From Podarcis melisellensis (lineage: Eukaryota), in NCBI GenBank assembly GCA_964234715.1, contig OZ174282.1: 64,000 bases of DNA; one strand, written 5' to 3'. Below the pieces are notes generated by a model. The model searched no databases. It was not told the origin of the DNA and saw only the letters and a program-made list of their open reading frames with translations. A program made the translations under genes and the position numbers. This document shows positions 270 to 62,270 of this stretch, one piece after another. Position 1 is the stretch's first letter; every line of letters starts with the position of its first letter.

Positions 270-11552
<11,283 letters not shown>

Positions 11553-29915: not shown

Positions 29916-30400
29916 GCGTCCGGGCTGCTGCAGCCGCTGTGTTCGTGCGCTCCTCCGCCTGACGAGCCGTCGCCGCCTCCGTGCGCGCCGCTCTGGTCAC
30001 TGCACCAGCCGCGCCAGCAGCCCGAGCGCTCATCGCCGGGGAGGAGCAGGAGCGGGGCCGGCCGGCCGGCCGGTTCGGGCGGGGGGCGAGGCAGGAAGGC
30101 AGGCGCAGCAGCGGCCGCGGCAGCCCCCCACCTCGGCCGTCGAGGAGCGCCGCTAGGCACTGGCCGAGGGGAGGGGACGGGGGCGGGGTGCGCGGGAGGC
30201 GGCCGCGCCAGCGCGCGAATGGCTCGCCTGCCGGTCCGCACCACCGGCTCACCCAGCGGGCTGCTGGGCTGACTTGGGCGTTCGGCTCCCTCCGGAACCT
30301 TTTCCGACCGCCTCGCGAAATCGGAGCCCTGGAACGTCGAAAAGCTGAGCGCCTCTGAGCACGTGCAGAGTTCCCGGCGCAATCCGCATCCCGCTGAAGT
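29300..30400. promoter_or_regulatory. CpG island / DBNDD1 promoter and exon 1
   Basis: Very GC- and CpG-rich, with several GGGGCGG boxes; spans the DBNDD1 ATG at 29915. Confidence 0.85.
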
Positions 30401-33420: not shown

Positions 33421-36400
33421 CACATGCTCAGGGGCATTCCTTCGTCACTCTTCCTTACGCGTGCCAAGAGTAAGCCCTGATATAAGCCTTGAGCCCCGGT
33501 AAGCACTGCTCTCACCACCACCACCAGCCCCTATTTTACAAGTGTGCCTCTTCAACGCCATGGAGCAATTGCACAGGCAAGTAGGTGCAGGCAGCCAGAA
33601 CTCATTTGTCCTTTGGAGAGAGGGAGGGATGCCCTTTCATAGAGAAAACGGCACTTCATCATTGCTCAAAGGGGTTATGAACATGAATTCACAGCCTCCT
33701 TCCTTTCTTTGGCTTAATCCATCACACTGAAGATGCTCTCCTCTCCTCTCTTGTCCTCTCCCCCACTACCGCGTTTGTTCAGGCTCCCAAAAAGAAAGGA
33801 GAAAAGAAAGGTGGCAAGAAGAAAGGTGCAAAAAGCCCTGTGGTGGATGTCGTCTCCCCGGAGGGCATGACCAAAGAGCAGGTGAGAAGGGGGTCACTTT
33901 GCAGTGGTAACAGAGAGGGTGCATTCTTAAAAATGTGTGGATGGGAAATAGAAACTACAATGCAAAGTGGTTTCTTGCCAACAAGAGGGAAACCAATCTA
34001 CCTAGAGTTACTTAGGGGACTCCATTTTCTAGCAGCCCCAGGATGATGGGAGTTGTAATCCAGCAACACCCTGCAGGCTACTCATGTTTCCCACCCCTGG
34101 CCTGTATCACATTAGAAAATGGTCAAGGTGTTTCTCATTTTGGGGTGGAGTGGAGTATGGGGTGCTTGGCCTACCCTCATTATCTCCGACCTTCCTGGCT
34201 AGGAATAAGACCAAGTGTGAGTCATGCAGTCCCTCAGCTGGCTTGTTGCAGGTCCACTCTTTCCATCCCTCTGACATTTCACTACAGCACTGAGGACCAG
34301 CATTGGGAGAAGCCACTATTTTGCCAGGGGTCTATGTTGTTCCTTACTACACCCTTCTGCATTCCATAGGGTAGCAAAACTAGGCACCTCTTCAGTATAG
34401 CTAAGCTCACAGTTCCATTTTACAGTTTGGGTACAGGTATTGTGAGAATATTGCACAGGAACAGCTTTTGCCATCCTGATGCCTTCCAGGTGTTTTGGGC
34501 TGCATCTCCCATTAACCCCAGCCAGCAAACCCATCAGTGTAGCTGATGGTAGATGACAACCAGCACATCTGGAAGGTACCAGGTTGGCAAAGACTGCCCT
34601 AAACATTCTAAGCTGATTTATCCACTTCCAGAGAGCAACAGACTCATGGAGCCAAGCCTCTCTCTAACCAGATAATTCATTCACCTATTTATCGTGCATT
34701 CTGAAATGAAACATTTGCACCCTTTCTGGAATTAGCCATGCTTCCCATGCCAGTTCACAGGAAAGCCTTGGCTTGAAAAGAAAAAGCTTTGGAATTCACT
34801 GAGTCAGAAAAGGCACAATGCCAGTAGTGGCGATGGTGGGCTCCCAGTCCTTCCTCTCGGCTCCAGCCTGGCTGTTGGCTGACCCTCTTCTTGGCTTTGC
34901 AGCTGGAGGAACACATGGGCCGCATTCGGGAGGAGCTGGACCGTGAGCGGGAAGAACGCAACTACTTCCAGCTGGAGCGAGACAAGATCCACACCTTCTG
35001 GGAGATCACTCGGAGGCAGCTGGATGAGAAGAAGGCTGAACTGCGCAACAAGGACCGCGAGATGGAGGAAGCCGAAGAGCGTCACCAGGTGGAGATCAAG
35101 GTAAGAGCCTGTGGACTTCACAGATCACAGAACTGTAGAGCTGGAAGGAATCCCAAGGCTTATATAGTCCATCCCCCTGCAGTGCAGGAATCACAGCTAA
35201 AGCATCCCTGACAGGTGAGTAATAAAACCATGAGCTGCTTTGTATGGAGTATGTATTTAAGTAAAATAAAACATTTCCCATTGGTACGAACCCAACAACC
35301 TTTTACTAGGGACCTTTTGCCTGTGAAACATGCTCTCTGCAACCATTGACCCATGCTGCCTCCACTTGGGGTTGAGCAGCTAGATATTGGCTTCGCCATC
35401 CCCGCAATGTTGTGGATGGAAAGTGGGGAAATGGCTACGGCATTGGAAGGGTCTATTCTTTTGGCATAAAGACATAGAGGCTCACATGCTCCTGAATCTT
35501 CTTCAGTTCCTGGTACTTGATTAACTTGGAGCCACGGTGCTGCAGACAGAGTTGGTCACCAGCTTGGTTGGTCTGGCACCCCTGGCTGGGGCACCACAAC
35601 CGACTTCCATCCCCTTCCCCACAAGTGCCTCTCATTTACTCAGGCCTCTGCAAAAGAGAGTACCTTGGCCAATGAGGGCCAATGCCTGCCTCGTCTTCCT
35701 TTTGTCTCAGGTTTACAAGCAGAAGGTGAAGCACCTGCTGTACGAGCACCAGAACAACATCACAGAGCTGAAGGCAGAGAGTACAGTGTCTATGAAGCTG
35801 GCCCAGAAGGATCACCGGTCCCAGGAGATGGAGCTGCGTAAGGACATGCGAACCTTGAAGGTGGAGCTGAAGGAGCAGGAGCTGTCCAACGAGATGGTGG
35901 TGAAGAACCTTCGGCTGGTATGTCTGAAGTGATACCGGACTTGGCTCTTGGGCTGGGCTCAGGCCAACTTTCGTTGAGTGCATGGTGTGCAGGTGGGAAG
36001 GAGAGGGGTGGTGGTTCTTAAACCTCAGTTGTTCCTCCAGAGCAAACCAGCCTTGGCTTTGCTTCTGAGCTAGGAGGAGTAGGCCTTTGTATATGCAACA
36101 TCTGTCACTAACCAGTATCATCATCTTGGCAGAAACAACAAGAAGACATAACACGATTGCGCAATGACTTTGAGAGGCAGGTGAAAGGTCAGTTCTGGGG
36201 CTCGCCACCAAAAACTGTGGGGTTTGGGTTTGGAAGGGAAAGCTATCTTTGTGCCCAGGCAAGGATCAGTGGGCCACAGTGTCACTTCATCCCTTGGGCA
36301 CCCTTTCTCGCACACATGCAGTGACAAGGGAGCTGCTTCCTTATGGCACAGTCTCACTCTTCTGGAAAGTGTATGTGTATGACTTTGTAGCCATGGTGTG

Positions 36401-39400
36401 TAAGGCCCATCTCATGAGTCCGCCCTATGTTGTGTGTAATTGAGGCTAAGTAGCAGCTTGATAGAGAGCACTGATTTGCGTAGGGCCTGTCTTGCAGACC
36501 AGCTCCTGTCTGTTTTGCAGTCATTCCGAGGGAGGGGCCTGAGGCTTCCTTGAAATGCCACATGCATTATAAGGAGGAAGATGACAGCAGTTCTAAGCTC
36601 CTCATCAAATTAAATGTGTCAAAATAGCTAGGCACAGGAGTGCCATTTGCTAGGCCTTCTATGAATTCCATCTCTGCTGGGAGCTTTGTAGAATGCCAGG
36701 CTCCATGGGCCCATCCTTTGCTCAGAGTTGTTTATATATAGTCTGAGCACTTCCAGTACCTTTGGGTGACAACATTTTCCAGTCAGCTGAGAGTCTTGCT
36801 TCGCCCTCTTGTTGGAGCTGGAGAACACTTTGCCCCATCTCCTCTTCCACACAGCATAGAGAAACAGCCCACAGATAGAGGCATGCATAGCCTTGTCACT
36901 TTTTTGCCTAGTAGAGCACTCAGTCTGCCCTGGGTGCTGCTTCCCCAGAGATCGAGGCCAAGTATGAGAAGAAGATGCGGGTTCTACGCGATGAGCTAGA
37001 CTTGCGCAGGAAGACTGAAATCCATGAGATTGAGGAGAGAAAGAATGGACAGATCAACACACTGATGAAGAATCATGAGAAGGCTTTCAGCGACATCAAG
37101 AACTACTACAACGATGTCACTCTTAATAACCTGGCACTTATCAACACCCTCAAGGTAAAAGACATGCACCACACGACACCATCCCCAAATCAGCCTGTTG
37201 CCAGGTAGTGGAAGGTCAAAGTGGATGGTGTTCATTGGGCTTTCTGTGTTTTGTTTTTTCTTCTGCTTTGGCTGATTTCTGTACTGCCATTGCTTTGGAG
37301 CCACTACATGTTGCATTTGTTTGCTCTGCCATTGTGGATACCTTGAGTCCTGGAGCTCCTCTTTTGTGCATCTCACTATGGACCAACCCTTGTTGTAGTT
37401 GAAGGTCATGTGTTTCCCATTTGGGGAAATGAACCATTCTGGTTTGGGGAGAAAGTCTGTTTCTATATTTTATATGTCAACCGCGACCTTGTTTGTTTGG
37501 AAATTTGTTCCATTCACTTCAGTGGGCCAGTCAAATGAGTCAGGATGCAGCCTTGGTTATCCTCAGGTGATTGAGCTGTTGTTTCTCTTTGCCTTGGTGG
37601 TGGTGGGTCCCATGGGAGGTTTGAGGAAGCATGTTCCAGACAGGTGGTCAGGACTGGTGGGATGAGGCTTGCTGCTTGTTTTTGAGGATCTGAGGCACAC
37701 CCAGCCTCCTTTCTTTGTGTGTGTCTTGGAGTACAGGAGCAGATGGAGGAGATGAAGAAGAAGGAGGACCATCTGGAGAAGGAGATGGCTGAAGTGCTGC
37801 TGCAGAACAAAAAGCTGGTGGAGCCACTGCAACGAGCCCGTGAAGAGGTGGCGGAGCTGCAGAAGAAACTGGCGCACTATGAAAAGGACAAGGCCATGTT
37901 GCATGTGAGTCCCAGGGCTCTGCATTCACCTTTGCTTCCTGTGTGTCCTGGCCAATGAGCTCTGGGTTACTCAGTAGGACTGACTCTCTGCTAGTTTGGT
38001 GTGAACAGCACTGGGCTATTTCTGCACCAGCCCACTTTCATGACACAGATTTTTATTTCCACTTTTGGTAGCAGTTTGCATTGTCTCTATTCTCATGTGC
38101 CCTTTATTTCCAGAGTTTGGAAATTTGTACTGTGTGAAATAGGCCCCACCTTTCTGTGATGTCCTTCAGTGCTAACAGTGGTCATTTAGAGTCTAGACAA
38201 ATGTTACTGCGCCTTCCATTCTAGTTTTTGTCCAGAACTTTGCTTTTTATTTTTATCAGTGTTTCAAGATGAGAGTTTCGTGATTTTACATGCAGCCACG
38301 TACTCACGACCAGAGATGTCTTTTTAGGTTTGTTCCCTTCTGATGCTGCACACTCCACCAAAGTTGTTGGTGTGTCTGAATGCACAACAGCTTTGCCATA
38401 ATCAAAAATAGACTCAACTACATTCAAAATACAACTGCAGAGCAATTGAGTTACTATGAGAAGAGGAAGGCAGGGGGCCATAAGGATCATGAAACATGCT
38501 GGAAGTTGGGGGCAAGAGACCCCTGAGCTGATGTTTCCAGGATGAGGGACTTGAATGATGCCCAGTCCCTGTGGAGCAGATAGAGGAACATAGTACTTTC
38601 CCATTCTTACAGTTTCTCCTTTGCACTGTCTGGTTTGGAGGTCAAAACCCATCAGTCCCTTCTGTGCACTAGGAACTGTGTGCGGCTGCTTTAACCTCCT
38701 TCTCTTCCCTCTCCAGCACACACATGCCCGTTTGAAAGTCACCGAGAAGGAATTAAAAGATCTCCAGTGGGAACATGAAGTGCTGCAGCAAAGGTTCATC
38801 AGGGTAGGGATCAAGAATCACTGTTGTGCTGTCGCTGAACTTAGAGTTGGGAAAGGGTTGGATTTGATGGGTGGGCTGTGGGACAGGATGAAAAATACGG
38901 GCCCATTTTCTGCAGATATCCAGTAGAGAGGTCTATAGAGCCACCCACCCACCCACCCACCCACCACCCATTGGGCCTTGAGAATTCTGTGGTCCTGGTT
39001 GTTTCTTGATGAGACCTTTAGAGCAGATGGACAAGTCTGAGCCAAAACTGCCTGCAATAGTCATTCCCTGTCATCTCCAAATTAGCTGTGTAAATTTTTG
39101 CGGTTCTTTTGGATTGCTTGAGCAGCTGGACTTTGTGTTTGTCTGAACAGCAGCATGTCTACTGCTGGGCTGGGCTGGTCATCAGTATGATTTAAAGAAG
39201 TGGGGACTGTGATACTGGAGAGGGGCAGCTCCCATCGGGGGTGGGGGGTGGAAGGGAGGGGCTCTCTTCAGTATAACTCATTAAGACATGGGGGCAGGTT
39301 TGCGTGCCATTCAGCATTGATCTGAGACCTCATTAGTTGCCTTTGAAAACTGGCTGCAGTGGTCCTGTCTTAATGAGGGGGTCTCTGACTAACAAGAATT

Positions 39401-42400
39401 GGGTCAGGCTGCCTCCCATCCCTCGTCCCCCACAGATCCTTGCAAAGTGCATTGGGAGAGAAAGGAGGCCTTTCTGTCCCCAAAGGCATCATTCTCTTGC
39501 TCTCCTGAGGCTGCTTAAAGCCCATGGCCTAGTCTACCATGCCTTGCTGGGTGGTCTGTTTCTGTTCCTGAAATGGGGGAAAGAGGTTGCTGCAGATTCC
39601 TCAGTTCTCTGGCTCCTGAGGAGGAGGCAAGCAAGCGTACTGGGGGCTTCCTTGGAGCTGCCCTCTATGACTGCTGCAAGGCCGAGGTTGAAAACAGGGG
39701 CTTGACTCTTCCTGATAAAGGTCAGCATATGGGAGCACAGCAAGGCAGTGGGTGGGCATTTGCATGGCACGCGCGCACGTACACACACACATGCACGCAC
39801 ACACATGCACATATAGCACAATGCAAGATGATGGTTTTAACTGATAAAAACCTAATCACCACCAGCCCTGTTTTCCAGCTCCCACTGCCTTCCCTGATAG
39901 CCTGAAGGGCTGCCTCAGAGCTCTGCATTGCTCCTCCCTCTGTGACTCACTAAAGTCCCAACTTTTGGAATCATTGCAACATATTTTCATCTGTGTTGGT
40001 TTGTGACAGAGGGGGTGGGCAGCTGTTGTCATTGGGTAGCTGGTTTTTTATTTTTGGAAGAAGACTTTTATGCACGAATGTTAGGACTATAGACAGTTGC
40101 CTAAATACACAGTCAGACCCTTCGTCCATGCAGCTCCGTCTTGTCTATGCACTGACTGGCAGTGGCTCTCAAGGCTTCACCTTTCCCAGCCCTCCCTGGG
40201 ATGACTCTGGGGTTGATGGTTCTCTGACAGGTGCAGGACGAGCGAGATGACCTGTACCAGAAATTTACCAAAGCCATTAATGAGGTGCAGCAGAAAACTG
40301 GCTTTAAGAACTTGTTGCTGGAGCGGAAGCTTCTCGGCCTCTCCAACATCCTGGAGAAGAAGGAGGTGCAGCTCAACGAGGTCCTGGCTGCCACCAACCT
40401 TGATCCCGGTGCTCTCAGTGTGGTCACCCGCAAGCTGGAGGTACTGTGCTTCTAATCACCATGAGGATTATAGAGAAGGTTTATAGATATTTTTCTAATA
40501 CCCTTCAGTTAAACAAACAGCTCCCAAGCCAGATGAGAGCAATCGGTCAGATTCCTTCTTGCTACTGTTTCAGATGGGGTTTGTCCTTGGGTTTCATATT
40601 ACCAAGATGGATTAGGCAAGATCTAGGTAAAACCTTGCAATGCACAGGGAAAAGGTGCACTGGCTAAAAGGGAGCTGCCAGGGGCTCACGGTGTGGGCAA
40701 GTGCAGGGAGTCATGCTTTAATAAGAGACTCTCATTCAGGGGCAATTAATAAATGTAGCCTGCACAGTATTTCAGAGGAGCTGCCCTTAGTTGTGCACAA
40801 GAGGCCCACAAGCATGAAAAGCCTTTGCCTCAGCCCTCCAAGCAATCAGAGCATGTACAGTAGTACCTTGGGTTACAAATGCTTTGGGTTACAAACGCTT
40901 TGGGTTACAAACTCCGTTAACCTGGAAGTAGTACCTCGGGTTGAGAATTTTGCCCCAGGATGAGAACAGAAATCGCACGCCGGCAACACAGCGGCAGCGA
41001 GAGGCCCCATTAGTGAAAGCGTGCCTCAGGTTAAGAATGTTTTGAGTTAAGAACGGACCTCTGGAATGAATTAAGTTCGTAACCCAAGGTACCACTGTAC
41101 CAACATTTCCATTTGCCAAGCAGGCTCTGAATGCACACGCACACAACTGGCCTCCAGTTGCCTCGAAGCTCCTGGGAGGTGTTTGTTTCCAGCAGCAGCT
41201 ATAGAAGTGAGTCACATGGGCAGTACTGTGGGCAGAAGGGACCCTCGCAGCAGTGACTGAACCAGTGGTGGGGTGAATTGCTCCACTGGGGATTGCTTTT
41301 CCTTCCTATCTGACCTGAGCCTCTTTCGTGCTTTCTTGGGACATAGAATGCCCAAGCAGTCAGCAAGTGTCTGTTGTGCTTCTGGCTGTGAGAATACACT
41401 TGGCACGAGGGTGCTGTGCCTGGGGAAATCTGCAGGAGCCAGATTGAAAGGGGAAGCTCCAGTGGTCAGAGACTTCAGTTTCTTTTCCTTCTGGCTGGTG
41501 GAGTTGGAAGAGATTCTACATGCAAATCTGCTGAACCTATGTGCCATTTATTCTGGTCCCAGAATCCGTTCAATACCCAGAACACATGTGCCCCTTTGCA
41601 GCATGTGAACTGTGTGAACTGAAGCGGCAATGTGCCCTCGTTGCCAGGGCGGTGTTTCCTGCTCTGCTGCTCAGTCTCCAGTGGAGATGGAAAGGGAGAG
41701 AGAGAATGAGCTCCTGGCTGCCTTCTCGGTTCCTTGCCTCCCTCCTCCTCTCCCTGCGGCCACTTGGGAGTGTCAGAATCTTCTAGGCACACAAGCGTGG
41801 CTTGGGGACTGCTTGCCACACAGCTTTCTCTCAACTCGTTCCACTCCACGGGGTTTCCCTGGTTGTTGATTTCCTAGCTGCCCGCTTTCTTTGCTAAGGT
41901 TGGGTTCTCTCTGACAGCACCCTGGTACACAGCAAGGCTATCTGCACTTTCAAAGCATTCCCCTGGCACATCAAGTTGTTTCTGGGGAGCAGGGGCTGCC
42001 CATCACGCTGCCAGGGCCCCTCCTCTCTGTGTTTCCAGCCCCAAGAGCCAAGGGAGGTTCTCCATCATAGGGACCTCTGTGGCCTCCTCACTCTTCAGGC
42101 TTCCTGTCCTGTCCAGTCTCTGAAATGCCTGATGGTATGGAAACAGAGTTATCTCCCGTGACTTGGCCTGCCTGGGAAGGGGGCTTAGTTAGCGGCTTCC
42201 ACATTCCAAGCAAGGCTGGCGCCAGTAACTGGAGATTCTTCCCAGAGGCAGCTGCTCCTTCCAGCAGGCCTCCCACATTCCTACCTTCAGCTGCTGCTTG
42301 CGCAGGAGGCACATCCACAGGGGATTCCCTGGGTATTGTAGCACCAGATCCTGTGCCAAATAGGGCAAAAAATGGCTTGGTGGCAGAAATGCCAGCCCAC

Positions 42401-43860: not shown

Positions 43861-44481
43861 GAGGCCCTGTGGTGGGCTATTCAGTCTTCAGTCTCTGCAA
43901 AGCCTCCCTTTTTCTTTCCCACCCACGTCAAGGCAGAGCTTGGGGACTTGAAAAGCATCCTCCTCTTGATTAATGAGCCCCTGGAATACTTAATCCCACC
44001 TTATCTAGAGCCTCCAAAGTCCTCCACACCAATGTTGTGTCCACTCAAGCACCTCTGAAGAGCCTGGCTCCTGGATCCAGGCTAAAGGACTACCTGGTCC
44101 AGCATCCTGTTCCCCACAGTGGCCAAGCAGATGCCTCTGGGAAGCCCACAATCAGGACGTGAGTGCAGCAGCCCTCTCCCCACTCATATTCCCCAGCAAC
44201 TGAGGGAGCCCTACCTAATCAGTAGAGCACACGTGTGTCAAGGACCCAGACCCAATTCATGGCATCTCCAATTTAAAACAAGAGGCTTACAAGTATCAGA
44301 CTTTAGATTAATCTCACATTTACTGCACGGCAGCTACTCATGGCCAAGCCCCCAGCCAGAGGATTGGGCCAGAGGTGGCCGTGGATGTAACCACAGCTCT
44401 TCATCTGCTGGACTGCATCATCTCTCTCAGAACAGGCACCCCGGTTTGCTGAAGCAGCCCCTCCTGCTGGCCGGTCTCCCA

Positions 44482-45400
44482 CTAGCTTCCCCTGTAGGTG
44501 GTATAGGAATAAGGGCTGAGCAGCAAGGGAATATGCACTTTTTCTTCCTCAGTGATGGTGAAGACAATCTAAAGAGAGAGACAAGCAAGAGGATGTGTAA
44601 AGACAAGGGAGGGGGGAATAGCAGGAGGCTGGTAGTGCTCTTTGGTTTGAGATCCTTTCTTCGCTGCACTGGGCCTAGCCCATGAGAAGACATTTGTCAG
44701 GGGCCCAAATGCCTGGTCCAGAGCACCCTTAGTGCCCAGTCCTGGCACACTTCTGGCTTTGTGCTCTTTCAGGGATGTCCCATGCACATCTAGCTCTCCT
44801 ACCAACCACCTGGGCCTCTTCCTGCAGGTTTCTGAGGGACTTCACAGCGTGCAGCCTTCATAATGTGAAGTTTATGCTGATTTCTCCCATTTTCCAACGT
44901 TGTGCTTCTCCTGCCAGGAATTACATCCCTCAAAGGGCAATGAGTGGTGGTCCCTGCCATCATCAGTCCTCCCTATGTTGGAAGGAGCCTCCCCCCCCTT
45001 TCAGGTGTGAGTTTCATCTGGGAACCAAACTTACTTCCACATAAGGGTAAAAGCTGCTGTATCCTTGTTGCTCCCATTACTCCCTCGTCTCAAAGCGCAG
45101 CTTATAGGTGCCAGGTTTCAGCTCCCTGGGCATCGGGCTGTTTCTGTCCAAGCGCCCATCAGGATTTGTCTTGCTGGAACGGAATAAATGAGGCTGAAAC
45201 TGCAACGGCCCCAGCCCTACCGAGGGAGGGAGATTGTCCCGCTTCATCCCCTCCTACCTTCTCATGAGCTCTGCCCACGGACGTTGGGGATCCTCCAGCT
45301 TAGAGAAGTGCATGGCCAGGCCTTGGGCAGGGAGGCCAGTGAGCACGTTCAGTGCATGGACAGTCAGGAAAGCGTGGTGGACCTCATCTGAACTAGCCAC
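44482..45400 (-). pseudogene. URAH: 5-hydroxyisourate hydrolase (HIUase, transthyretin-like) exons with one in-frame TAA; probable 3' half of a cadherin-URAH fusion
   Basis: Exons 45400-45258 (VASSDEVHHAFLTVHALNVLTGLPAQGLAMHFSKLEDPQRPWAELMR), 45173-45035 (SKTNPDGRLDRNSPMPRELKPGTYKLRFETRE*WEQQGYSSFYPYVE) and 44568-44482 (IVFTITEEEKVHIPLLLSPYSYTTYRGS*). The HIUase His, DGR Arg, second His and C-terminal YRGS are all present. TAA at 45079-45077 replaces a conserved Tyr. Tail-to-tail position next to GAS8 is as for human URAHP. Pseudogene status is uncertain (single lesion). Confidence 0.9.
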
Positions 45401-46829
45401 CTGGGATTCAGAATGGAGAGCCGGGTGGAGCAAAAGCCTCTGTACGAGTTCCTCCCCCTCCCATTTTCCTAGGTCCACCAATTCCCAAAGGAAGATGTCC
45501 TTGCCACCCTCAGCAGCAGGCCCTTATTTTCCAAGCTCTTTCTTGCTGCCTTCAGCAGTTTTTCCTGTTTTTAAATGTTTGCTTTTTCTCCCAGGTGCTG
45601 TGTGCACGGGGGCTTTCTGTGAGGTGTTGTGGTTGTGGGGAGAGAGGGAGGACCCCACCCACTTCTCACCCATTCACCAGCTGTGTTTGTTCAAACTCTG
45701 CTGGCTCCTGGGTGAGGGGTTTTGTTGGGGGTGGGTGGGTTAAAGACAAGATGCCCTCGGCAGACCCTGCTTGCCTTCTGATGTCCGCACTGCCCATTCA
45801 TTTGCCCAAATTGTAGCCCTGCAGCTTGACATAGTGCCTGCCACTGTTTGTACAGAGAGGGCAGGTGAGCAAGTAATGAAGGTGCAGAGGAGGTTCAGGG
45901 GCAATGAAGGTCAGCAGTGGTCCCCACTGGCTGTGTCAGGATGGGCCTGGGCAGGTGCCTTACAACACCAGCCCCTTGACAGAAGCCCTGCCTGACAGAA
46001 GTGCATTCATCCACTCTTAAGCATGGCGGAGCAGTACTCCTGGGTTTCAAACAGAGGTCCTTCCCAGCCCTATCTGGAGGTGTTGGGGGTGAACCTAAGA
46101 ACACTGAGTTATGACCCCTCTCCACCCAGAAGGTGGGCCTGAACAATGGCAGCTCTGCTCCCTGTCCCATGTATGATTTCATTGCCTTCTTAAACATTTG
46201 ATCCCTGGCCACAGAGTTCCTTTACTTTCTGGCACATGCCATGAAACTCCCCAAGACAATCAAGAGTGTGGCATTCAAGCTTCTTGTTTTTCGTGAGCTG
46301 CAAGAAATATACATTCCCATCCCCTTGCCAAGTTTCCCAATGAAACACCAAAGCAGGAAGGCTGAGCCCACCCACCATCCTAGGATCTCTCACCACCTGG
46401 CGTCTCCCTCCTCCCTCCCTCTGTGGTAGTTGGTTTCTCTCATCCATTCTGGGGCATTTCTGATGCAGCCCCTTCTAACTCCACTTCCTACTTGCTTTCC
46501 ACTGGCAGGCTGCTTGTCTGTCATGACTCAGCAGAAAGTCTTAACCCTTTTGTTGCCACGAGGGCAGGCTCAATCGGGTGCCCCCTGAAAACATGAGAAA
46601 GGGGCCCAATTCATTTCATGGCAAGGGGGGAGGGTTCCATCTCCATCTCTACCCAGCCTAATCTGTAAAATATACATTTGAAGTTCTTGGGACTTCTCAC
46701 TGGAGTAAAATGCAGCAAGCATTTTGTGGGAGAACCAGCAATACTGTCATGCCCCAGCAAGAGCAAAAAGGAAGATACAGGAGCAGTTGCATGGTTACCC
46801 GAGAGTATTTGTGAGTTCCCAGTCCTTAC

Positions 46830-49800
46830 TTGGATCACTGCTGTTGCTGTAGTGCTAAGACCTTCTCCTAAGCAGTCTGTAGCCTGCAGGATCAGAGTGT
46901 ATTGGGGGGTTACCTGTAAACAAATATATCCATTAGCATTTGGGCAGAGGGGATCAAAGCACCTGAAGGCAAAGCAGTGTTGCGTAAGATCCTGAGAGCC
47001 CCACTGGCCATGTAACTCGAGGAAACTTCAAACTCACTAGGGTACTTCCAGATACAGCAAACTGAAATGGGACAAAGCTGTTATGCTAGACCAGGCACAG
47101 GCAAACTCAGCCCTCCAGATTTTTTGGGACTACAGTTCCCATCATCCCTGACCACTGGTCCTGCTAGCTAGGGATCATGCGAGTTGTAGACCAAAAACAT
47201 CTTGAGGGCCAAGTTTGCCTATGCCTATGCTAGACCACCCTTGTTATTAGGAATATGTGAAAAGAAAATTCTTCATTATTGCAAACCATACAGTTAAAGC
47301 ACATGACTTCCCCCAGAGAATCTGGGCAAATGTAATTTGCCCCTCACAGAGCTACAATTCCCAGTACCCTTGACAAACTGCAGTTCCCAGGATTCTTTGG
47401 AGGAAGTCATGTGCTTTATATGTGTACAGCTTATGTCCACTTCATCTTCTGTTTAGGGCAGCCCTCCAGATATTGGAAGGTGGCAGTCATGCTGTTCATC
47501 TGCTCCAGACTCAAAGCCTTCCCTCTTCTCTTTCAGAAATCCCTTGCAAGCCCCTCCCCATCCTGCTTGGTCCCCCTCCAGCTAGCCTCTAATCCACCAG
47601 TGCCTTATGGCCCAGTGTTTCCACTAGGAGTGAAGCACAGCAGCAGAGCCAAGGGTTGCCTCAAAGTGGAAATTTGGCATCTTTAATCATGCCCTCTCCC
47701 TACACAGCCAGGACCCAGCCACTTACCGTTCTGTCAAGTCCTGGTTTGTTCAAGCTGATGACCCCTGTTCTATTATCGATGGCAAACATTTGGCTCTGTG
47801 GCTTTGTGGGGGTCTGGATATCGAGGGAGTAGGTGATTACTCCATTGTAGGAATTCACAGCGTCATCTATGTCAGTGGCTGATACTTGTGTCACAAAGGT
47901 ACCTGGGTGCGTGTGCCACAAAAGTCCAAAGTTCAGCTTCTGAAGTGCATCACACACATACCCGCAACATAGCCGATCATCCCAGCTTGGAGGTCAAATT
48001 GACTCTGCCCCAGACAGCTCCGAAATTACCACTTAGCCTCTGAGTGAATGCAAACTGTGCAGCAGCTGGGTGCGATCTGCACTACTTTTATGCCAGTCCG
48101 CAAGTTATGGTGGGCTCAGTAGTGACCGCCCAGGCCATACAGATAGAAAAAAGCACAGTTAGGGGCCTGGGTTTTGCACACATTATACCCCCTCCCTTTG
48201 TGGGTGCTCCTTCCATAAAAAATGGGCAAAGGATATAGGCATTCAGAGGCAAATAGGGGTTTCCATACATTCAGTTCATGCATGTGCAACCAGACAGACA
48301 GACACGTACCTGGCGGGGCTCCTTCTGCTATGGAGCCATGGAAGATGCTCTGGGTAAAACGGGGCTTGTTGTCATTCTGATCAAGCACCTCGATGACGAT
48401 CTCTGTGGGGTTCCTCACAGGCTGCCCAGTTGCACTTACAGCGTGAAGAAAGAGCTGCAGAGCAAGCAGGGTAGCAATTGAGACACTCCCCAAAGCTGCC
48501 TCTCACCCTCCCAGACACCTTCCCACAAGAGTGTAGAGTTGCCCTTCTCTTCACACCAAGAGCACCCAGGAATTTACATTAGGGGCTAAAAAGTATTTAG
48601 ATACTGTATGCTGAGAATTCAAAAATGAAACTAAGCTGAACTTTCTCCTCCTTCCCATAAATAATGGTTGCTAATACTATTGCTTCCTGGGGATTCCCCA
48701 ATAACTGACATAAAGCAGCAGCAAACATGTGATTTCCACTCTTTCCCTGCCCCATAACACATAGCAGCCTTCCCCAACCTGGTGCTCTCCAGCAGTTTTG
48801 AACTACGAGTCCCATCAGCTCCAGCCAGCACAGCTATATGATGCTTGGGCTGATGGCAGCAGTAGTCCAAAGGATCTGGAAGGCACCCGGTTGGCAAAGG
48901 CAGTTTTAAGAGGTGCTGGGAGGTCCCAGGGTGACAGAAGCTAGCACAAAGGGACTTACAATGTATTTGTCTTTGGTCTCTCTGTCCAATGGCATGGTCA
49001 CCATCAGCCAGCCTGTCTCTCTTTCAAGGATGAAGATGCCTTGAGGAGGTCTGTCTGCACCAGTCCCAGTGACACTGTAGAAAGTCATGCCATCTTTACC
49101 TACCTGGTTGCAAATGAACATGTCAAAACTGAGAAGGTCTGTTTTCTTGTTGCCTCCCTCAGAGGTAGAACACAGAGAGGGATTCTGAGCAGATTCATAG
49201 GAGGAAAAGAAGTCCCCCGAGCATAGTGGTTCTGAGCTGTTCAAGGCAGATGAAGAGAAAGAGGCAGTTGCCCTCTCTGTCTATACCTGCAGCAGACGCT
49301 TGGGGTAGGGACCGATTCCATTCTCCATGACCAATATTGGAGGCAGAAGTTGCAAATCCCTTTTCTGCCTCTTCAGATCAAGTCTGGATTCTGGAAAGGT
49401 CAGCACTTCTGCCCAAGCAAATAGGAAGGAGACCTGCAAGGGGGAAAGAGAGTTGCATATTTATTTATTTTTTAAAAACCCTCATTCAGAGCCCAATCCC
49501 ATGGCATCTTCTATGTGAAGACAAGTTTGGCACTCCTTAAGATTTGTAGGGATCTCGGGACAGGACAGTGCTGAACCTCAGGATTCAGTCCTGGAACATG
49601 TGAAGGAAGACACGTCCTGGAATCTGGACACACCTCTATGTCAAGAGTATCTTCCTTCTATCTTAAATGTCAGTATTGGGTTTGCATTACTGTTATTTAC
49701 CTGAAGTCCTTTCACTTCATCTACCTGCCACAGGTAGCAACCAGTCTGTTTTGCAGCCTCCAATGAGCAGTAGTCAAGGGTAGAGCTGATGAGAGTGGAG

Positions 49801-50604
49801 ATGGGCCAAGAGGCCTTGCCACGGCTCCCACACCCATGGCCACCATCTTGTTGACCCCTTGGGCTAGCCTTATTTGTGTTATCTGATCCCTCTGCAAGGC
49901 CAGATGCTTTGCAGTCCATGGAAGATTCATGGTCCCTGTTGACAGTTTAAAGGTTGGTGCTCCCTGGTGGTTGTTTTTAAAGGAAATGCATGTTTGCTGA
50001 TTCAACATTAGTTTGGAACATTGGCAACTGCTCTTATCTTCTCAAAACCTATTTGCTTTGAACAACTATGCTGCCGGTAGAGTACAGTGTAGAGAGACAC
50101 AAGACCAATATTATGAAACCTTCCTCAGCCCAGTAACATCTGCATGCTCATTCGATAGTCACATCTCCTCCACACTCTGTTCATGCTCGTCTTCATCTTT
50201 ATCCCCACACCCCAGCTCTTCCACAAGGCCATGTTCAACACAGCTGGGGGACAGCACCTGTACTTTGCACACAGGAATTCCCAGATTCAAACCCAGCCGC
50301 TGCCATCCTTAAGGATTTCTGGTTTCAGCAGCACAGCAAAATCACTGCCTGGAGTCTTGGGGAACTGCTACTAGTCAACACTAGTTGGACAAAGAGCCTG
50401 GTCTGGTGTGATAAGGTTGGTTCATGTGTTGGTACCTCTTCTGCACCTACAAAACCCTTAACCCAGCCCCTCCACCGTTAATGCCAAGAAGATCCTTCTA
50501 CAACACCAAAGATACTAGCCCCGCTTCACTTTCTCTTTGGAGGACAATCCTACCTGAGAGTGAAGAACCAGGAAGAGCAGGAGGCTGACCCTAAAGAAGC
50601 ACAT
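46830..50604 (-). CDS. Truncated type I cadherin-like gene (signal peptide, furin site, EC1, EC2); probable 5' half of a cadherin-URAH fusion
   Basis: Exons 50604-50554 ([17 protein letters not shown]), 49433-49287 ([49 protein letters not shown]), 49103-48960 (...[35 protein letters not shown]...), 48454-48310 (LFLHAV...DQNDNKPRF...; 145 nt), 47902-47727 (ATDIDD...; 176 nt) and 46913-46830 ([28 protein letters not shown]). All GT-AG with no stops or frameshifts; the 145- and 176-nt exons match CDH1 exon 6/7 sizes as recalled. Confidence 0.88.
47092..47227. mobile_element. Palindromic hAT-type MITE (high-copy family)
   Basis: TIRs CAGGCACAGGCAAACT / AGTTTGCCTATGCCTA; 8-bp TSD TGCTAGAC (47084-47091, 47228-47235). 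Related copies with the GGACTACAACTCCCATCA core at ~4990, 24357, 31802, 34462, 48765, 56607 and 59592. Confidence 0.8.
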
Positions 50605-51239
50605 TGTCCGGCTTCAGCTCTTGCTCCTTGCCTTCTGCAAAACTCTGGCAAAGGGATGGCAACCCAGGTGACTAAGCTAGAGCAAAGTCTGCCTGGCAAG
50701 TCCCTTTGGAGGAAGGGTTAAGGGCAAATGGGCAGGCCTGGGGTATTTTGACACACCACATGGAAGCAGGCCACGGTTGACTCAGCATGTGGGACCAAGT
50801 GAAGGGCATGTGCTTGTGCCCTAGGAACATCTCTTGCAGGTGGCACTGCCCTCCATTGTGCAAGTCTCATTTATTCTGGCAGTGTAAGCATTTATTCTTC
50901 TCTCATTTTGGAGCAGGTATTCTCAGGACTCGACCCTCTGAAGCTCTTTCGAATATCAGAGCTCAGTTTTATGGCCTTTCTCCCTTTGTTTTGATTCAGA
51001 GCAGAAATTTTCAATAAAACATGGAGTGGAGGAAGGTATTGTTATGAAAACAGAGGAAGCCGCTTTCCTTGTGGAGAAACGGTGGAGGGTCTGTCCACTC
51101 TCCCTTTCACAGTAGCAGGAGAGTGCCATGCCTAGTCCTGACCTTGTGGCAGACATAGCTTCCTCAGAAGGCAAACCAGGTGCCCCACAGGTTGAGGGCC
51201 TTAAGGAGGCTCTGGAACAAGTGATGAGGAGGGACATAC

Positions 51240-53419: not shown

Positions 53420-54430
53420 AACATTAAAAAAAATAAAAATGTAATTTTCAGTTATATACATTTCAATAGTTTTACAGGCATTTTAACATTTCAAAACTCG
53501 ACTTCCTCCTCTTTCTACAGTTCCTTAAATTTCTATTTATTATTTCCTGCATATTCTGAATTAACTTATTCTTTTATTCATCTACTTTAATTATTTACTC
53601 TTATGAAACTGCAGGTCATTACAATAATCCTGCCAATGTCCTTATTTGTTTGCAATTTATTTGTACATATTCAGTAAGCCATTTCCATTCTTTAATTTTT
53701 TATATATATAAATGTTTATTAGGGATATAAATATTTATTAGGGCATTTCCATTCTTTTATAAAAAGTTTGTTGTCTTGATTTCTTATTTTTCTGGGAAGT
53801 TTTGCCATTTCTGCATAGCCCATGAGTTTTTGTATCCGGTCGTCTTTCGTTGTGACTTCTTCTTTCCATTTTTGGGCTAATAACATTCTTGCGGCTGTAG
53901 TCGCATACTTAAATAAATTTCTATACTGTTTAGGTAGTTCTACCCCTATAATTCCCAGAAGGAAATCTTCTGTTTTTATTTTATTTTTACAAATGTTGTT
54001 TTAAACATATTTTTCAATTCATTATATATCATTTCCCAGTATGCTTTAACTAGGACCACCATATATGATAGAAAGTACCTTCTTTCTCTTTGCATTTCCA
54101 ACACTTATTTGATTTAGATTTATACATTTTTGCCAGTTTACTCGGTGTTAGATACCTTCTATATAACATTTTCATATAGTTTTCTCTGAAACCATAGCAT
54201 GCTGTAAATTTTATATGTGTGTTCCACAATTGTTCCCATGCTTCCGTATCTATATTATAACCAATATCTATTGCCCAATGTCTCACTGAAGATTTTACTT
54301 GCTCATCCTTTGTTTCCCAGTCCAATAATAACTTACACATTTTAGACAGCACTTTAACATTACATTCCAACAGATCTCTCTCCATTTTTGATACCTGTTC
54401 CCCAAACCCTCATTTCTTATCTTTCTACTC
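53420..54430 (-). mobile_element. 5'-truncated L1-clade LINE, ORF2 C-terminus and 3' UTR
   Basis: ORF 54050-54385 ends in the L1-type zinc knuckle YLTPSKL...CWKCKEKEGTFYHIWW; AT-rich and stop-interrupted. Boundaries approximate. Confidence 0.8.
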
Positions 54431-58500: not shown

Positions 58501-60886
58501 TATTATTGACTATACCCCATGGTGCCATTGCCAGCTGTTGGTGCTGTGGCTTGGTGGTTAGAGAGATGCCCTGTTTAGCTTGCAGTGGCTCCCAGGAACA
58601 CCCTCTCTTTTGCCTCCTCTAATACAATCTGATGTTGGCCAGACATGGAAAATGTTAGAGTAGGAGGATAATCCATATTCCCAAAGGAGCTTGAACTTGC
58701 CAGACCCAAGTGCTAGACGCAGGTTGTTACTGGAAGCTGGTTCTGTCAAACAGGTGTCTCTGGCTTCCCTCATAGCCTGCCCTGAATGAACCTCTTTCCC
58801 TGCTGGATTCTCCTTCCCCCAGTGGGTCTTGAACCCTTCCTCCAGGAATGGCTGTATCTCCTTTTCTCCTAAGGGGCTGTGTGTCCTGGTAGCTTCATCT
58901 GCTTTCCCTCCATGTGTTGAGATTTTTTTTAAGTGTGTGAGAACAAGGGAAAGGCCATGGCTTAGTGGCACAGCAGCTGCTTTTCATGCAGATCATCCCC
59001 ACCACCTCTAGGAAGGGCTTGGGAGAGATTTCTCTCTGAAATCCTGGAGAGGAGTAGACGGTGCTAAACTAGCCGGGCTCACAGTTAAATATTTGTTTAT
59101 TTTTATTGATACCCAGCCTCTTCCACCCATGTTGGGTGTTCCGAGCAGCAGACAAATACAGTAAAACACTAAAATCTTAACCACGGCCTGGGTCATTGCT
59201 GACTGTGCCACAGGATGGTTTGGCTATCATTCATGCTTTGTTGTGTGTGTGGTTTGCCTCGCACCTGGCTGAGTATATTATATAGAGGCCATTCTCTTGG
59301 CATAGTGGTGGCATCACCCGCTCTCTCCCTGGTGTGATTTGTTTAAATGGCTTTGTCAATCTAGAACAGTTTCCTGTTTCCCAAGACAATCCCCTGGATG
59401 CTTCTAGGAAGCAGATAAGTGAGGCAGAAAGCAGTGGGCCATTCCCTGACCTCACCCCAGTTGCTTGCCCCCCTAGCCACCAATATTCAGAGGCAGGCTA
59501 CCTTTGCACATGGAGGTTTTCATGTACAGTAGTGATTGTGGCCAACAACAGTCACAGGCAGGCAGCTCTTCCTCCATGAATTTGTCTAATCCAGGGCTTG
59601 GGGAGACTGTGGGCTTCCTCCAGATGTAGATGGACTACAACTTCCAGCAGCCCAGGTCATTGGTTGCACTGGGAGGCTGATGGGAGCTGGAAGTCCAAGA
59701 GCACCCAAAGGGCCACAATGTTCCTCATCCCTCATAGGATTCTTGTAAAGGCCTTGAGCCTGCTAAGAGCCCATTTCCATGGCCCAAACTGGACACAAAG
59801 TCCTTCAGTCTTTTGCCAACTATTGATTCCATAGCACACTTACCTGCATATATTATAGCTGTGGTTTCATATTACCCAAGTACCTGTTTTTAGCCTATTC
59901 ATTGGAAAACTGATTAAAGAGCATTAATATTTTAAGAAGAAATACAAGTGACCTTTAAATAATGTTTTTGGCATTCTGGTTTTTTAAATTAAAAAAATGT
60001 CTGTGGATCTTCTGATTTGATTAGGGTTTTGTGTCTTTATTATTAGTATCATCATCACTGATTTATTAATCATGTTCTAAATCCCCACCACAAGATAATT
60101 TACACATAAGATAATTAAAAGTGAGTTAAAACCACAAATAAATTTAAAACTAGTCTAAAACCGTAGCAAGTGGGCACTCATCTCTAGCTGGGAAAGCCTG
60201 ACAGGTGAAGGGAAGCTATACCTCTGAGCATGGCAAAAGGGCCTTTTCTGACTGTTGTGAAGCTGTCCACAGGTACCTTCAAACAGGAATGAGAACGCGG
60301 GGTCCCAGCTTAAATCTTTATGGAAGCTCAAACCCCAGCGCCTCTCTGCTGGAGACGCTTTCCTGCATCTTCTGGAATATTTCGCTGTCTCCCAAATTGC
60401 AAAGTCCTTCCAGGATCTTCTACCACTCGGGCAATGATGGTCCCTGGACTGGGGGCTCCCCACTGCTGCTCTACTGGTGCCCTTGAAAATCGTAGCTCCC
60501 ACAACCTTGGACTGCTCGTGCCTTGGGGTCCGGGGTTCCTAGCGGGAGAAGCCACGTGGCCTTGAGGAAGGGATGGCCAGGATCGAGCCCCATGGAGAGT
60601 TGCAACAACGGGGGGGGGGGGACTCAAAGGCGTGGGACTCAACGAGAAACCAAAGAGAGATTTGGACAATCCCTTTTTGAAGATGTCACTGTAAAAGTTT
60701 TATTTCCTTCTTTGGGTACTTTTTATTTTGAAAAATGCAGCCTCCAGTTGAACCTTCGTTAAAAATGCAGAAAGCTAAAATCGCATTAAGCGATGTAGGG
60801 AGGTGAAAGCAATTTGGAAGCGGGTGCTGAATGAAGAGGGAGGCCCCCCCTGCCAGAAAAGCGCCCCCCGCGTAACCGAAACACAG

Positions 60887-61026
60887 NNNNNNNNNNNNNN
60901 NNNNNNNNNNNNNNNNNNNNNNNNNNNNNNNNNNNNNNNNNNNNNNNNNNNNNNNNNNNNNNNNNNNNNNNNNNNNNNNNNNNNNNNNNNNNNNNNNNNN
61001 NNNNNNNNNNNNNNNNNNNNNNNNNN
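60887..61026. other. Assembly gap (run of N) at the cadherin CpG-island edge
   Basis: About 140 N; true length unknown. Confidence 0.99.
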
Positions 61027-62270
61027 CGATGGAGCCGGTCTCGCCCCCTGGCCGCCTTTGCAAGACCCGGGCGAGCGGGGAGGGGCCGGGGCGGTGGCAG
61101 CGGGAGCCCCGCCCGCGGAGCCTCACCTGGCGCGGCGGCTTTAAAGGCGCCGGGCAGGCCGGGCGGAGCCCCGCAGTGGTAGTAGCAGCAGGCGAAGCAG
61201 GCGGGCGACGCGAGGGGGCCTCCTTCAGCCCAGGCAGCTCCAGGCGACGCAACGCGGGACGCGCCCGGAGCTCCGACGAGGTTTCTCTTTGCCGACGGCG
61301 GCGCTTTCGCTTCTCGTCGCGGCGATGGGGCTCCCGCGGAGCTGCCTGCGGGCCCTCTTGTTTCTCCTCCTCGAGGTGAGTACCAAACTAAGCGGGACCC
61401 CGAAGGACGGTGTCGGTAAACAGCAGATCCCGGGGAAGGAGAGCGGAGGGGCGCATCAGTGCCTTGGGCGAGATGTTGTTCCTCGAGGGGAGGAGGGTCA
61501 CGTTTCCCTTTCCCGCTTCCCGGAGGCTTCAGGTACCTGACTGTCCCTCCGTTTGCCCCTCTCAGGTGGGGACTCTGCTAGCGGACCCGACGCAACTTTG
61601 CTCCGCTGGCTTCACCTCCAAAGTCTTCACCATCGAGGTGCCGGACGGAGACCTGCCCCGGGGACACGTTTTGGGCCAAGGTGAGGAGGCGGCGGCGCGC
61701 GCGGGGAGAGGGGGATACCGTCTGATGACTTTTCCGGTCCTGGAAGAGGACTGGGGGCTTTGCGTGCTGGGCCGGGGGGGGCGCGATTGCACGATTTCGA
61801 GCATTTGTCTGAAATGAGCCCCTCTCCGTGGCGTCTGGGCGCGCTCGCGTCTTTTTTTGGCTGTCCCTTCTTCTGCTCTTCCTCGGGCTTTGTTGCCCCC
61901 CCGAGGTCTCCTGGCTGATCCTTTCCCTGTGTGGGTGTTTATTTCGATTTCCCGTAGTATAGTTTATGGGGTGGGGCGGGGGTGAGATCCATCTCGGCAG
62001 AGCGCCTCGTGGGCTCCGGTTTGAAGATTGCGACAGGGCAGGAGAGGCGCCTTCGACGGCTGCGACGGGCTCCTCCTGCAGCCCCGGGCGCCGCTTTTCT
62101 AATCCTCGGGATTAGTCTTTTTTCCGACCCTTGCAAATTGGACTGCGGGCTGACCACTGCCTCTCCGACCCCGCCGTTTCTGAAAGCTACGAGTGGGGTT
62201 GGCAAGCGTCACTCGCCCGTGGCCTCTGGCCCTTGAGGTGGCCGCGCTCCGCCTGGCGCGGCAGTACTGT
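61027..62270 (+). promoter_or_regulatory. CpG island / cadherin promoter with GC boxes, E-box and TATA-like element
   Basis: CpG-dense; GGGGCGG box near 61088, CACCTG at 61124-61129, TTTAAA at 61140-61145. Confidence 0.75.
61325..61680 (+). CDS. CDH3: Type I classical cadherin, exons 1-2 (CDH3/B-cadherin-like; CDH1 not excluded), continues beyond the window
   Basis: Exon 61325-61375 MGLPRSCLRALLFLLLE (signal peptide; MGLPR start as in CDH3) and exon 61566-61680 VGTLLADPTQLCSAGFTSKVFTIEVPDGDLPRGHVLGQ (115 nt, prodomain start). Intron 1 is short (190 nt). Cadherin identity is strong; paralogue identity is moderate. Confidence 0.7.

Follow-up and report, generated by a model that had tools for sequence, protein, structure and literature searches.

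A cadherin–HIUase fusion gene with a premature stop codon in Podarcis melisellensis

The DNA analysed here is a stretch of 64,000 nucleotides (nt) of contig OZ174282.1 from the Podarcis melisellensis assembly GCA_964234715.1 (hereafter "the window"), the minus strand of which carries, between positions 50604 and 44482, six exons (c1 to c6) coding for a signal peptide and for the first two extracellular domains (EC1 and EC2) of a cadherin, followed by three exons (u1 to u3) coding for 5-hydroxyisourate hydrolase (HIUase, the product of URAH). The locus is a broken copy of a gene that is already annotated in other species and that belongs to an unstudied family. The explanation taken as a whole, namely that an old vertebrate cadherin–HIUase gene, whose product is a secreted tetrameric fusion, is present in this genome as a recent null copy, is in our estimate about 80% probable.

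Exons of the fusion gene

The minus strand of 44300-50800 was read and each candidate exon was translated in running phase, with the following result.

Exon c1, 50604-50554, minus strand: ATG and a hydrophobic signal peptide of 17 residues, ending in phase 0; the same as residues 1-17 of the P. lilfordi and P. muralis "cadherin-1-like" proteins.
Exon c2, 49433-49287, minus strand: end of the signal peptide, short propeptide, furin site KRQKR and start of EC1 (DLQLLPP, Trp2 lost).
Exon c3, 49103-48960, minus strand: core of EC1 with the LDRE calcium motif; Pfam Cadherin, E 5e-7.
Exon c4, 48454-48310, minus strand: end of EC1 (HAV), DQNDN calcium linker and start of EC2.
Exon c5, 47902-47727, minus strand: core of EC2 with the DxDD motif; Pfam Cadherin, E 1e-7; best PDB matches EC2 of CDH3 and CDH1.
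Exon c6, 46913-46830, minus strand: final strand of EC2 (..TATAVIQ) and phase-0 donor; Pfam Cadherin.
Exon u1, 45400-45258, minus strand: linker followed by the opening HIUase strands, including the catalytic His (..LTVHALN..).
Exon u2, 45173-45035, minus strand: middle of the HIUase domain with the arginine of DGR; holds the premature stop.
Exon u3, 44568-44482, minus strand: last HIUase strands (HIPLLLSP .. YRGS) and TAG stop; Pfam Transthyretin, E 5e-10; unreachable behind the TAA.
In-frame TAA, 45079-45077, minus strand: codon 329, within u2; TAC or TTC in relatives; 42 nt before the last exon junction.
3' untranslated region (UTR), 44312-44481, minus strand: AGTAAA signal at 44324-44319; a contig of a relative (rec1 of run X1, see below) extends ~128 nt past 44440; putative poly(A) site.
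Optional cassette exon, 49695-49759, minus strand: used in P. muralis isoform X1 (392 residues, 21 of them extra after the signal peptide); located by tblastn and translation.
Putative alternative first exon in the c6-u1 intron, 46447-46394, minus strand: ATG, MDERNQLPQ..RRQV, donor GTG/gtgaga; matches the N-terminus of two HIUase isoforms of Lacerta agilis, XP_033012952/3.

The internal borders of all nine exons are of the AG (acceptor) and GT (donor) type, the donor of c6 and the acceptor of u1 share phase 0 and the exons add up to 1116 nt, so that the exon-by-exon translation bears out the nine collinear minus-strand exons, with their borders, phases and length, that had been proposed in a first-pass annotation of this DNA. 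Scored exon by exon, Pfam calls Cadherin in c3, c5 and c6 and HIUase/Transthyretin in u1 to u3, and the four HIUase signature elements, namely the N-terminal catalytic His, the DGR arginine, the HxPLL histidine and the YRGS end, are all encoded in the latter, the last two lying beyond the stop in this genome. The same annotation had noted that no exons for EC3-5, a membrane span or a catenin-binding tail lie between c6 and u1, and this holds much more widely, since none turned up in the whole 64 kb when 48 long cadherins were used as tblastn queries, whether for EC3-5, for the membrane span or for the cytoplasmic (catenin-binding) part; likewise, with the exon peptides of the locus itself, the fusion proteins and the 48 long cadherins as queries, no second cadherin copy was found in the window outside c2-c6. 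An open reading frame (ORF) at 61410-61817 on the plus strand, beside a CpG-rich stretch, was considered as the start of a cadherin prodomain and was dropped for want of a Pfam match.

The argument that the URAH exons, having no initiating Met, must depend on the cadherin exons stands only in part; u1 has no Met ahead of its catalytic His, but the 1.43-kb intron that precedes it contains the putative ATG-bearing first exon listed above (46447-46394). Within the same intron, the minus-strand segment 46112-46177 maps the N-terminal 22 residues of the Ensembl P. muralis HIUase model A0A670IQE6, which has no Met; an unspliced contig of one of the sequencing runs described below (X5) lies over 46002-46312, and the segment could represent one more 5' exon or just transcriptional noise. 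As to the optional cassette, the window is 4 nt short, so that the frame used by P. muralis runs into a TAG; the contig of run X1 at this place has CTGG inserted behind 49722, relative to the window. High-copy interspersed repeats occupy 47040-47440, in the c5-c6 intron, and 48640-48900, in the c3-c4 intron, where the summed depth of contigs from DNA runs is ~1e4 to 3e6 and many joints switch strand.

Transcripts and selection on the two halves

Contigs assembled from sequencing runs were aligned to 44440-50439; being contigs, not raw reads, they give no measure of expression level, transcript start or strand. One of the runs, X1, comes from a relative of the window species (organism A) and is guessed to be RNA, its depth being 180-296 over exons as opposed to 0-14 over introns. 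Its contig rec1 (567 nt, depth 296) consists of the last 30 nt of c6 followed by u1, u2, u3 and the 3'UTR, and the joint falls exactly at 46830/45400, with GT..AG intron ends; in addition, rec4 joins c5 to c6 at a depth of 255 and rec6 joins c2, c3, c4 and c5 at a depth of 180, the unspliced c6-u1 intron having a depth of just 14. The junction from 46830 to 45400, on which the proposal of a fused gene hinged, is therefore present in a spliced contig, with a depth equal to that of the URAH exons. The same junction is found in the snake, turtle and bird proteins of the alignment and, in a frog, a 1567-nt Logan contig contains one unbroken ORF of 464 residues comprising prodomain, cadherin and HIUase. 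The chimera is a real spliced transcript, and the idea that URAH is a plain pseudogene lying beside a cadherin fragment was rejected in view of the spliced contigs and the orthologues.

In an alignment of 45 fusion proteins, little or no variation is seen in the furin site and the calcium motifs (LDRE, DQNDN and DxDD) of the cadherin half, or in the catalytic His, the DGR arginine, the HxPLL histidine and the last Tyr of the HIUase half. The Trp2 of the mature cadherin N-terminus, the residue needed for strand-swap binding, is kept (DWVIPPI) in most species and is lost in the window and in all three other Podarcis, which have DLQLLPP. When the window is compared with P. lilfordi, to which the DNA of the gene region is 93.6% identical, the HIUase exons display 9 synonymous and 0 missense changes, and the cadherin exons 4 synonymous and 9 missense changes, corresponding to a ratio of non-synonymous to synonymous rates (dN/dS) of ~0.69. 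Strong purifying selection on the HIUase exons is thus observed, and of the two halves, for both of which the estimate of dN/dS had been called for, only this one is free of missense changes.

Six of the nine synonymous differences in the URAH exons (44482-45400) are T in the window and C in P. lilfordi, and at least four of these sites (44503, 44533, 45338 and 45356) are also C in the runs X1, X5 and X18, so that most synonymous changes of the HIUase exons are C-to-T changes on the window's branch. Synonymous divergence amounts to ~0.12 in the URAH exons and ~0.02 in the cadherin exons, with ~4% mismatches in the introns, all these values being based on small counts.

In emydids, geoemydids and leatherback turtles, DGR is replaced by DGH or DGN and YRGS by YKGS, and in Carettochelys, whose protein ends in YRES, an Arg takes the place of the second catalytic His; the turtle proteins, as far as can be judged from these replacements, may no longer be enzymes and yet the whole fusion is kept in all of them, which is suggestive of a function independent of catalysis.

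It could be argued that the locus works through an ordinary, separate HIUase, obtained by way of the internal first exon or of a c1-u1 splice, and that the fusion is a tolerated by-product of a decaying cadherin remnant. Indeed, in run X5, which is from the same species as X1, the URAH exons have a depth of 13-21 and the cadherin exons almost none, and therefore the fusion is not the sole product; furthermore, in Lacerta agilis c1 is spliced directly to u1, yielding an isoform with signal peptide and HIUase, short isoforms of 127-167 residues exist in both L. agilis and quail, and in Podarcis the lost Trp2 and the high dN/dS of the cadherin part stand next to HIUase exons without missense changes. 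On the other hand, the c6-u1 junction of X1 shares its depth-296 contig with the URAH exons, the cadherin exons of that run reach 180-255, and a mere by-product would not explain why the phase-0 junction, the furin site, Trp2 and the calcium motifs have been kept from coelacanth to birds, nor does it agree with the several turtles that keep the whole fusion without the catalytic residues. We consider this alternative unlikely. The X5 contig rec24 has 116 letters upstream of u1 that could not be placed.

The stop at codon 329 and the age of the family

The proposed frame of 371 codons is closed in the window by the TAA at 45079-45077, and the product ends at residue 328. Codon 329 specifies Tyr or Phe in 45 of the 45 aligned relatives; at position 45077 a plus-strand G, and hence a TAC codon for Tyr, is found in X1 and X5, both of organism A, and in the DNA run X18 of organism H, whereas the contigs of X15 (depth 53), a run probably from the window's own species to judge from its likeness, read T as the window does. 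Elsewhere X15 differs from the window in 6 other letters out of 2,056 bases and in a 25-base gap at 47630, and therefore the stop is not private to the assembly string. An assembly or base-calling error in a species that encodes the intact protein would fit a change of a single base, from TAC to TAA, in a codon that is open in three congeners and in X1, X5 and X18 and in an exon set that has gathered 0 missense changes; the T of X15, in a sequence that departs from the window at other sites, argues against such an error, although X15 could stem from the same individual, and we regard the error as distinctly unlikely.

The consequences of the stop can be read on the model of the intact protein presented below, in which the residues at the tetramer interface are mainly 335-347 and 357-371, i.e., beyond codon 329. 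A truncated product would accordingly be without the interface predicted by this model, His355 and the YRGS tail; insofar as the TAA ends every isoform early, these losses argue for a recent loss-of-function allele, and the stop should inactivate the copy carried by this genome. The HIUase exons having accumulated, with respect to P. lilfordi, 9 synonymous changes, no missense change and one nonsense change, selection must have operated until recently and the stop is young. A stop located less than 50-55 nt from the last exon junction escapes nonsense-mediated decay and, since the distance here is 42 nt, the truncated mRNA should by the usual rule escape it. The window copy, lacking an ORF that runs through to YRGS, is a member of the family by descent, albeit a broken one.

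The extent of this family emerged from a search with c5 alone against 1.84 billion representatives, followed by cluster look-ups, and from two word-index searches, one with the HIUase part of a turtle protein and one with that of a frog protein. The c5 search returned cadherin fragments ending in a HIUase domain, and 371-residue models named "cadherin-1-like" are on record for Podarcis muralis (XP_028595730.2), P. raffonei (XP_053255873.1) and P. lilfordi (CAI5782301.1), the last of which is called "hydroxyisourate hydrolase" in UniProt. The order signal peptide, KRQKR, EC1, EC2, HIUase put forward in the first-pass annotation is exactly that of these models; its surmise that the architecture was undescribed did not survive, RefSeq and UniProt already holding it under the two names just mentioned. 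Compared with each congener model, the window exons show 7-10 residue differences out of 368, nearly all of them in the cadherin half. Proteins combining PF00028 and PF00576 occur in many turtles, birds, snakes and lizards, in frogs (Bufo, Rana, dendrobatids) and a newt, and also in echidna, canids, meerkat, wolverine and coelacanth, whereas none of the ray-finned fish matches to the HIUase parts bore a cadherin domain. No paper on a cadherin–HIUase fusion was found in the literature searched, whose coverage is without most subscription journals; going by the sequence records, the family is conserved and is present in databases as automatic models with inconsistent names only.

The same distribution bears on the premise that exon shuffling in the lineage of uricotelic reptiles generated an intact secreted fusion of 371 residues and of new architecture. 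Exon structure, junction and length are correct in this account, and it is in keeping with the report that sauropsids, which lack URAD and liver uricase, have kept URAH (PMC10517255). However, the fusion occurs in coelacanth, frogs, newt, echidna and canids, none of which is uricotelic, and therefore it is old, predates the tetrapods and was not a response to uricotely; moreover, 371-residue models of three congeners were already on record and the frame has a TAA at codon 329 here. The link to reptilian uricotely is thus contradicted and the account as a whole is very improbable. Least credible of all is the view that URAH and a truncated cadherin pseudogene are distinct genes which gene predictors and chance contig assembly have merged, for which speak the inconsistent names (cadherin-1-like, B-cadherin-like, EP-cadherin-like, hydroxyisourate hydrolase) and the Ensembl Podarcis muralis models, which consist of the URAH part alone, but against which stand a spliced contig with canonical intron ends exactly at the predicted borders, the 1567-nt frog contig with its continuous ORF, the conservation of both halves and a coelacanth entry named "HIUase B".

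The surroundings of the gene are shared with other lizards. GAS8 exons lie at ~34500-41000 of the window, on the plus strand, where the DNA and the Zootoca GAS-domain gene align at 91%; the fusion gene is placed tail-to-tail with GAS8 in Zootoca and P. lilfordi as it is in the window, and the window DNA is collinear with both loci, in which the GAS gene is carried on the other strand. We take this neighbourhood of GAS8 and the fusion gene to be that of human GAS8/URAHP. In the chicken gene table, URAH is close to DBNDD1 on chromosome 11.

The Zootoca vivipara locus departs from this pattern in one respect, having, at L001 9218-24144 (corresponding to window 51458-47400), a different cadherin module in place of c1-c5, with a full prodomain, EC1-EC3 and a piece of EC4, and models of 605 and 633 residues. 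The flanks align at 87-91%, c3 and c4 at just 73-78% of their nucleotides, and the DNA of the cadherin part is not collinear with c1-c5, for which reason it was rejected as an orthologue of these exons; a look-alike of c6 (94% of nucleotides, one gap of 1 nt) is found at L001 24476-24558, downstream of the EC3 exons. Paralogous replacement, reciprocal loss of tandem copies and conversion are possible origins of this module.

Farther away in the window, ORF pieces at ~1900-10800 (plus strand) resemble by eye an AAA+ FtsH-type protease (SPG7 or AFG3L2-like), and an ORF at 54050-54385 (minus strand), in an AT-rich part (GC content 0.38-0.43 at 52-56 kb), resembles, again by eye only, the C-terminal part of ORF2 of a long interspersed nuclear element. 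GC-rich stretches of the CpG-island type are located at ~28000-31000 (GC content 0.62 at 28-30 kb) and at ~60700-61400, the latter holding a run of N (60.9-61.0 kb).

The predicted product and its known counterparts

The intact P. lilfordi protein served as stand-in for fold and assembly and was modelled by AlphaFold2 with a 45-sequence alignment. The model (mean predicted local distance difference test, pLDDT, 77) has a helix at residues 2-16, a disordered stretch at 17-45, which comprises the end of the signal peptide and the propeptide, and two beta domains followed by a third. Foldseek assigns the first two to E-cadherin EC1-2 (TM ~0.8, 56% identity), in line with Pfam, which calls Cadherin twice in the intact congener. 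The last 110 residues cover PF00576 from end to end and match by sequence the solved HIUases with E values of 1e-25 to 1e-27, compared with ~1e-13 for transthyretins.

Assembly was addressed by folding four copies of P. lilfordi residues 252-371 together with three controls, using a mark that is reached by 21 of 30 proteins solved as same-chain pairs and by 0 of 23 single chains (17 of 29 and 0 of 30, respectively, for eukaryotes). The score was 0.91, as against 0.00 for the best control, with at least 98% of the contacts agreeing between runs and a partner pLDDT of at least 84, figures which show likeness and not binding. The earlier idea of a tetrameric scaffold displaying cadherin arms remains plausible.

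The following mechanism can be envisaged. An upstream promoter would give rise to one mRNA coding for the signal peptide, a short propeptide with its furin site, EC1-EC2 with the calcium linker, a spacer and a complete HIUase; the product would be secreted and the propeptide removed at KRQKR, as is expected from what is known of signal peptides and furin sites. The HIUase domains would then form their usual homotetramer, from the core of which four EC1-EC2 arms would project and, in the species endowed with Trp2, these arms could bind cell cadherins or each other. The internal first exon (46447-46394) would instead generate a plain, non-secreted HIUase. In Podarcis, judging from the substitutions described above, it is the hydrolase that is conserved, adhesion being probably weakened.

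Several considerations weigh against the explanation favored here, i.e., an old cadherin–HIUase gene with a secreted tetrameric product and a recent null copy in the window. The RNA evidence comes from a relative, in the form of assembled contigs of a run whose type is guessed, and the depths found in X5, from the same species, indicate that the fusion may not be the main product everywhere. X15 agrees with the window at the stop but may be the same animal, so that the TAA could be fixed, segregating or an error. The loss of Trp2 and a dN/dS of ~0.7 suggest that the cadherin half may be decaying in the Podarcis lineage. The pass in the tetramer trial, finally, may reflect solved HIUase and transthyretin tetramers already known to the model, and secretion, furin cleavage, tetramer formation and 5-hydroxyisourate hydrolase activity of the fusion are predicted properties. 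For these reasons the broader proposition, that from coelacanth to birds and in some mammals there exists a functional family of secreted, four-armed, calcium-dependent proteins that has gone unrecognised in the literature, is put forward tentatively, its odds being in our opinion somewhat short of even.

What would be the significance of such a gene? In sauropsids, Urah has kept a high expression in liver, Urad is absent and Uox has moved to the skin (PMC10517255); Mori et al. 2023, from whom these data are taken, treat URAH as a plain enzyme, without mention of cadherin, and the question of its retention goes back, as cited in PMC10517255, to Keebaugh and Thomas 2010. In these animals a signal peptide and two cadherin domains open the gene of which URAH forms the final three exons, an arrangement that predates the tetrapods. 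Should the fusion turn out to be the liver form, this protein would belong to the plasma or to the cell surface, and a role beyond urate breakdown would explain why URAH is retained in uricotelic birds and reptiles devoid of URAD and liver uricase; candidate roles are tethering of the enzyme to cadherin-bearing cells, modulation of E-cadherin adhesion, or transport of a ligand in the manner of transthyretin. If so, the HIUase fold would have entered the secretory pathway by a second, independent route besides that of transthyretin. The null copy, if segregating in the species, is a possible natural knock-out.

The closest counterparts of the window gene are the Podarcis "cadherin-1-like" models, which have the same nine exons, the same junction (..AVIQ/VASSDEVHH..), the same length of 371 residues and the same GAS8 neighbour and are 97-98% identical to it; they differ in having Tyr or Phe at position 329, where the window has TAA, and they are automatic and misleadingly named. 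The Latimeria menadoensis "5-hydroxyisourate hydrolase B" (CCT61362.2, 497 residues) contains prodomain, EC1, EC2 and HIUase in one protein and is the oldest family member found in our searches; unlike the window gene, it retains a full cadherin prodomain. The entry presumably derives from a liver and testis transcriptome, and Forconi et al., who named it in 2014, reportedly took it for a second form specific to the coelacanth.

The fusion has kept the three catalytic residues (His, Arg, His) of vertebrate URAH proteins (zebrafish 2H1X and 3IWV) together with their YRGS end. The classic HIUase is an intracellular protein of ~120 residues, whereas in the fusion a signal peptide and two cadherin domains precede the HIUase domain. 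Transthyretin, the paralogue of HIUase, has the same fold and is tetrameric and secreted; it is a thyroid hormone binder that has lost catalysis and the YRGS tail and is devoid of cadherin domains, unlike the fusion, which retains YRGS and the catalytic residues and scores nearer to the solved HIUases. With type I cadherins (CDH1 and CDH3) the fusion has in common an EC1-EC2 region of ~56% identity, the furin site, HAV and the LDRE, DQNDN and DxDD motifs; it differs from them in being without EC3-5, membrane span and catenin-binding tail in the window and in having a short prodomain in place of the long one. By its sequence, then, the gene is neither a classical cadherin nor a transthyretin and bears a true HIUase signature.

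A further parallel is offered by allantoin synthase, the URAD–URAH protein of plants, diatoms and bacteria, whose HIUase domains have been reported to constitute a tetrameric core (PMC13751858). There too an extra domain is attached to the N-terminus of HIUase, a precedent indicating that an N-terminal partner is compatible with the tetramer core; the difference lies in the nature of the partner, which in allantoin synthase is the next enzyme of the pathway, in a protein that is not secreted, and in the gene described here is an adhesion module.

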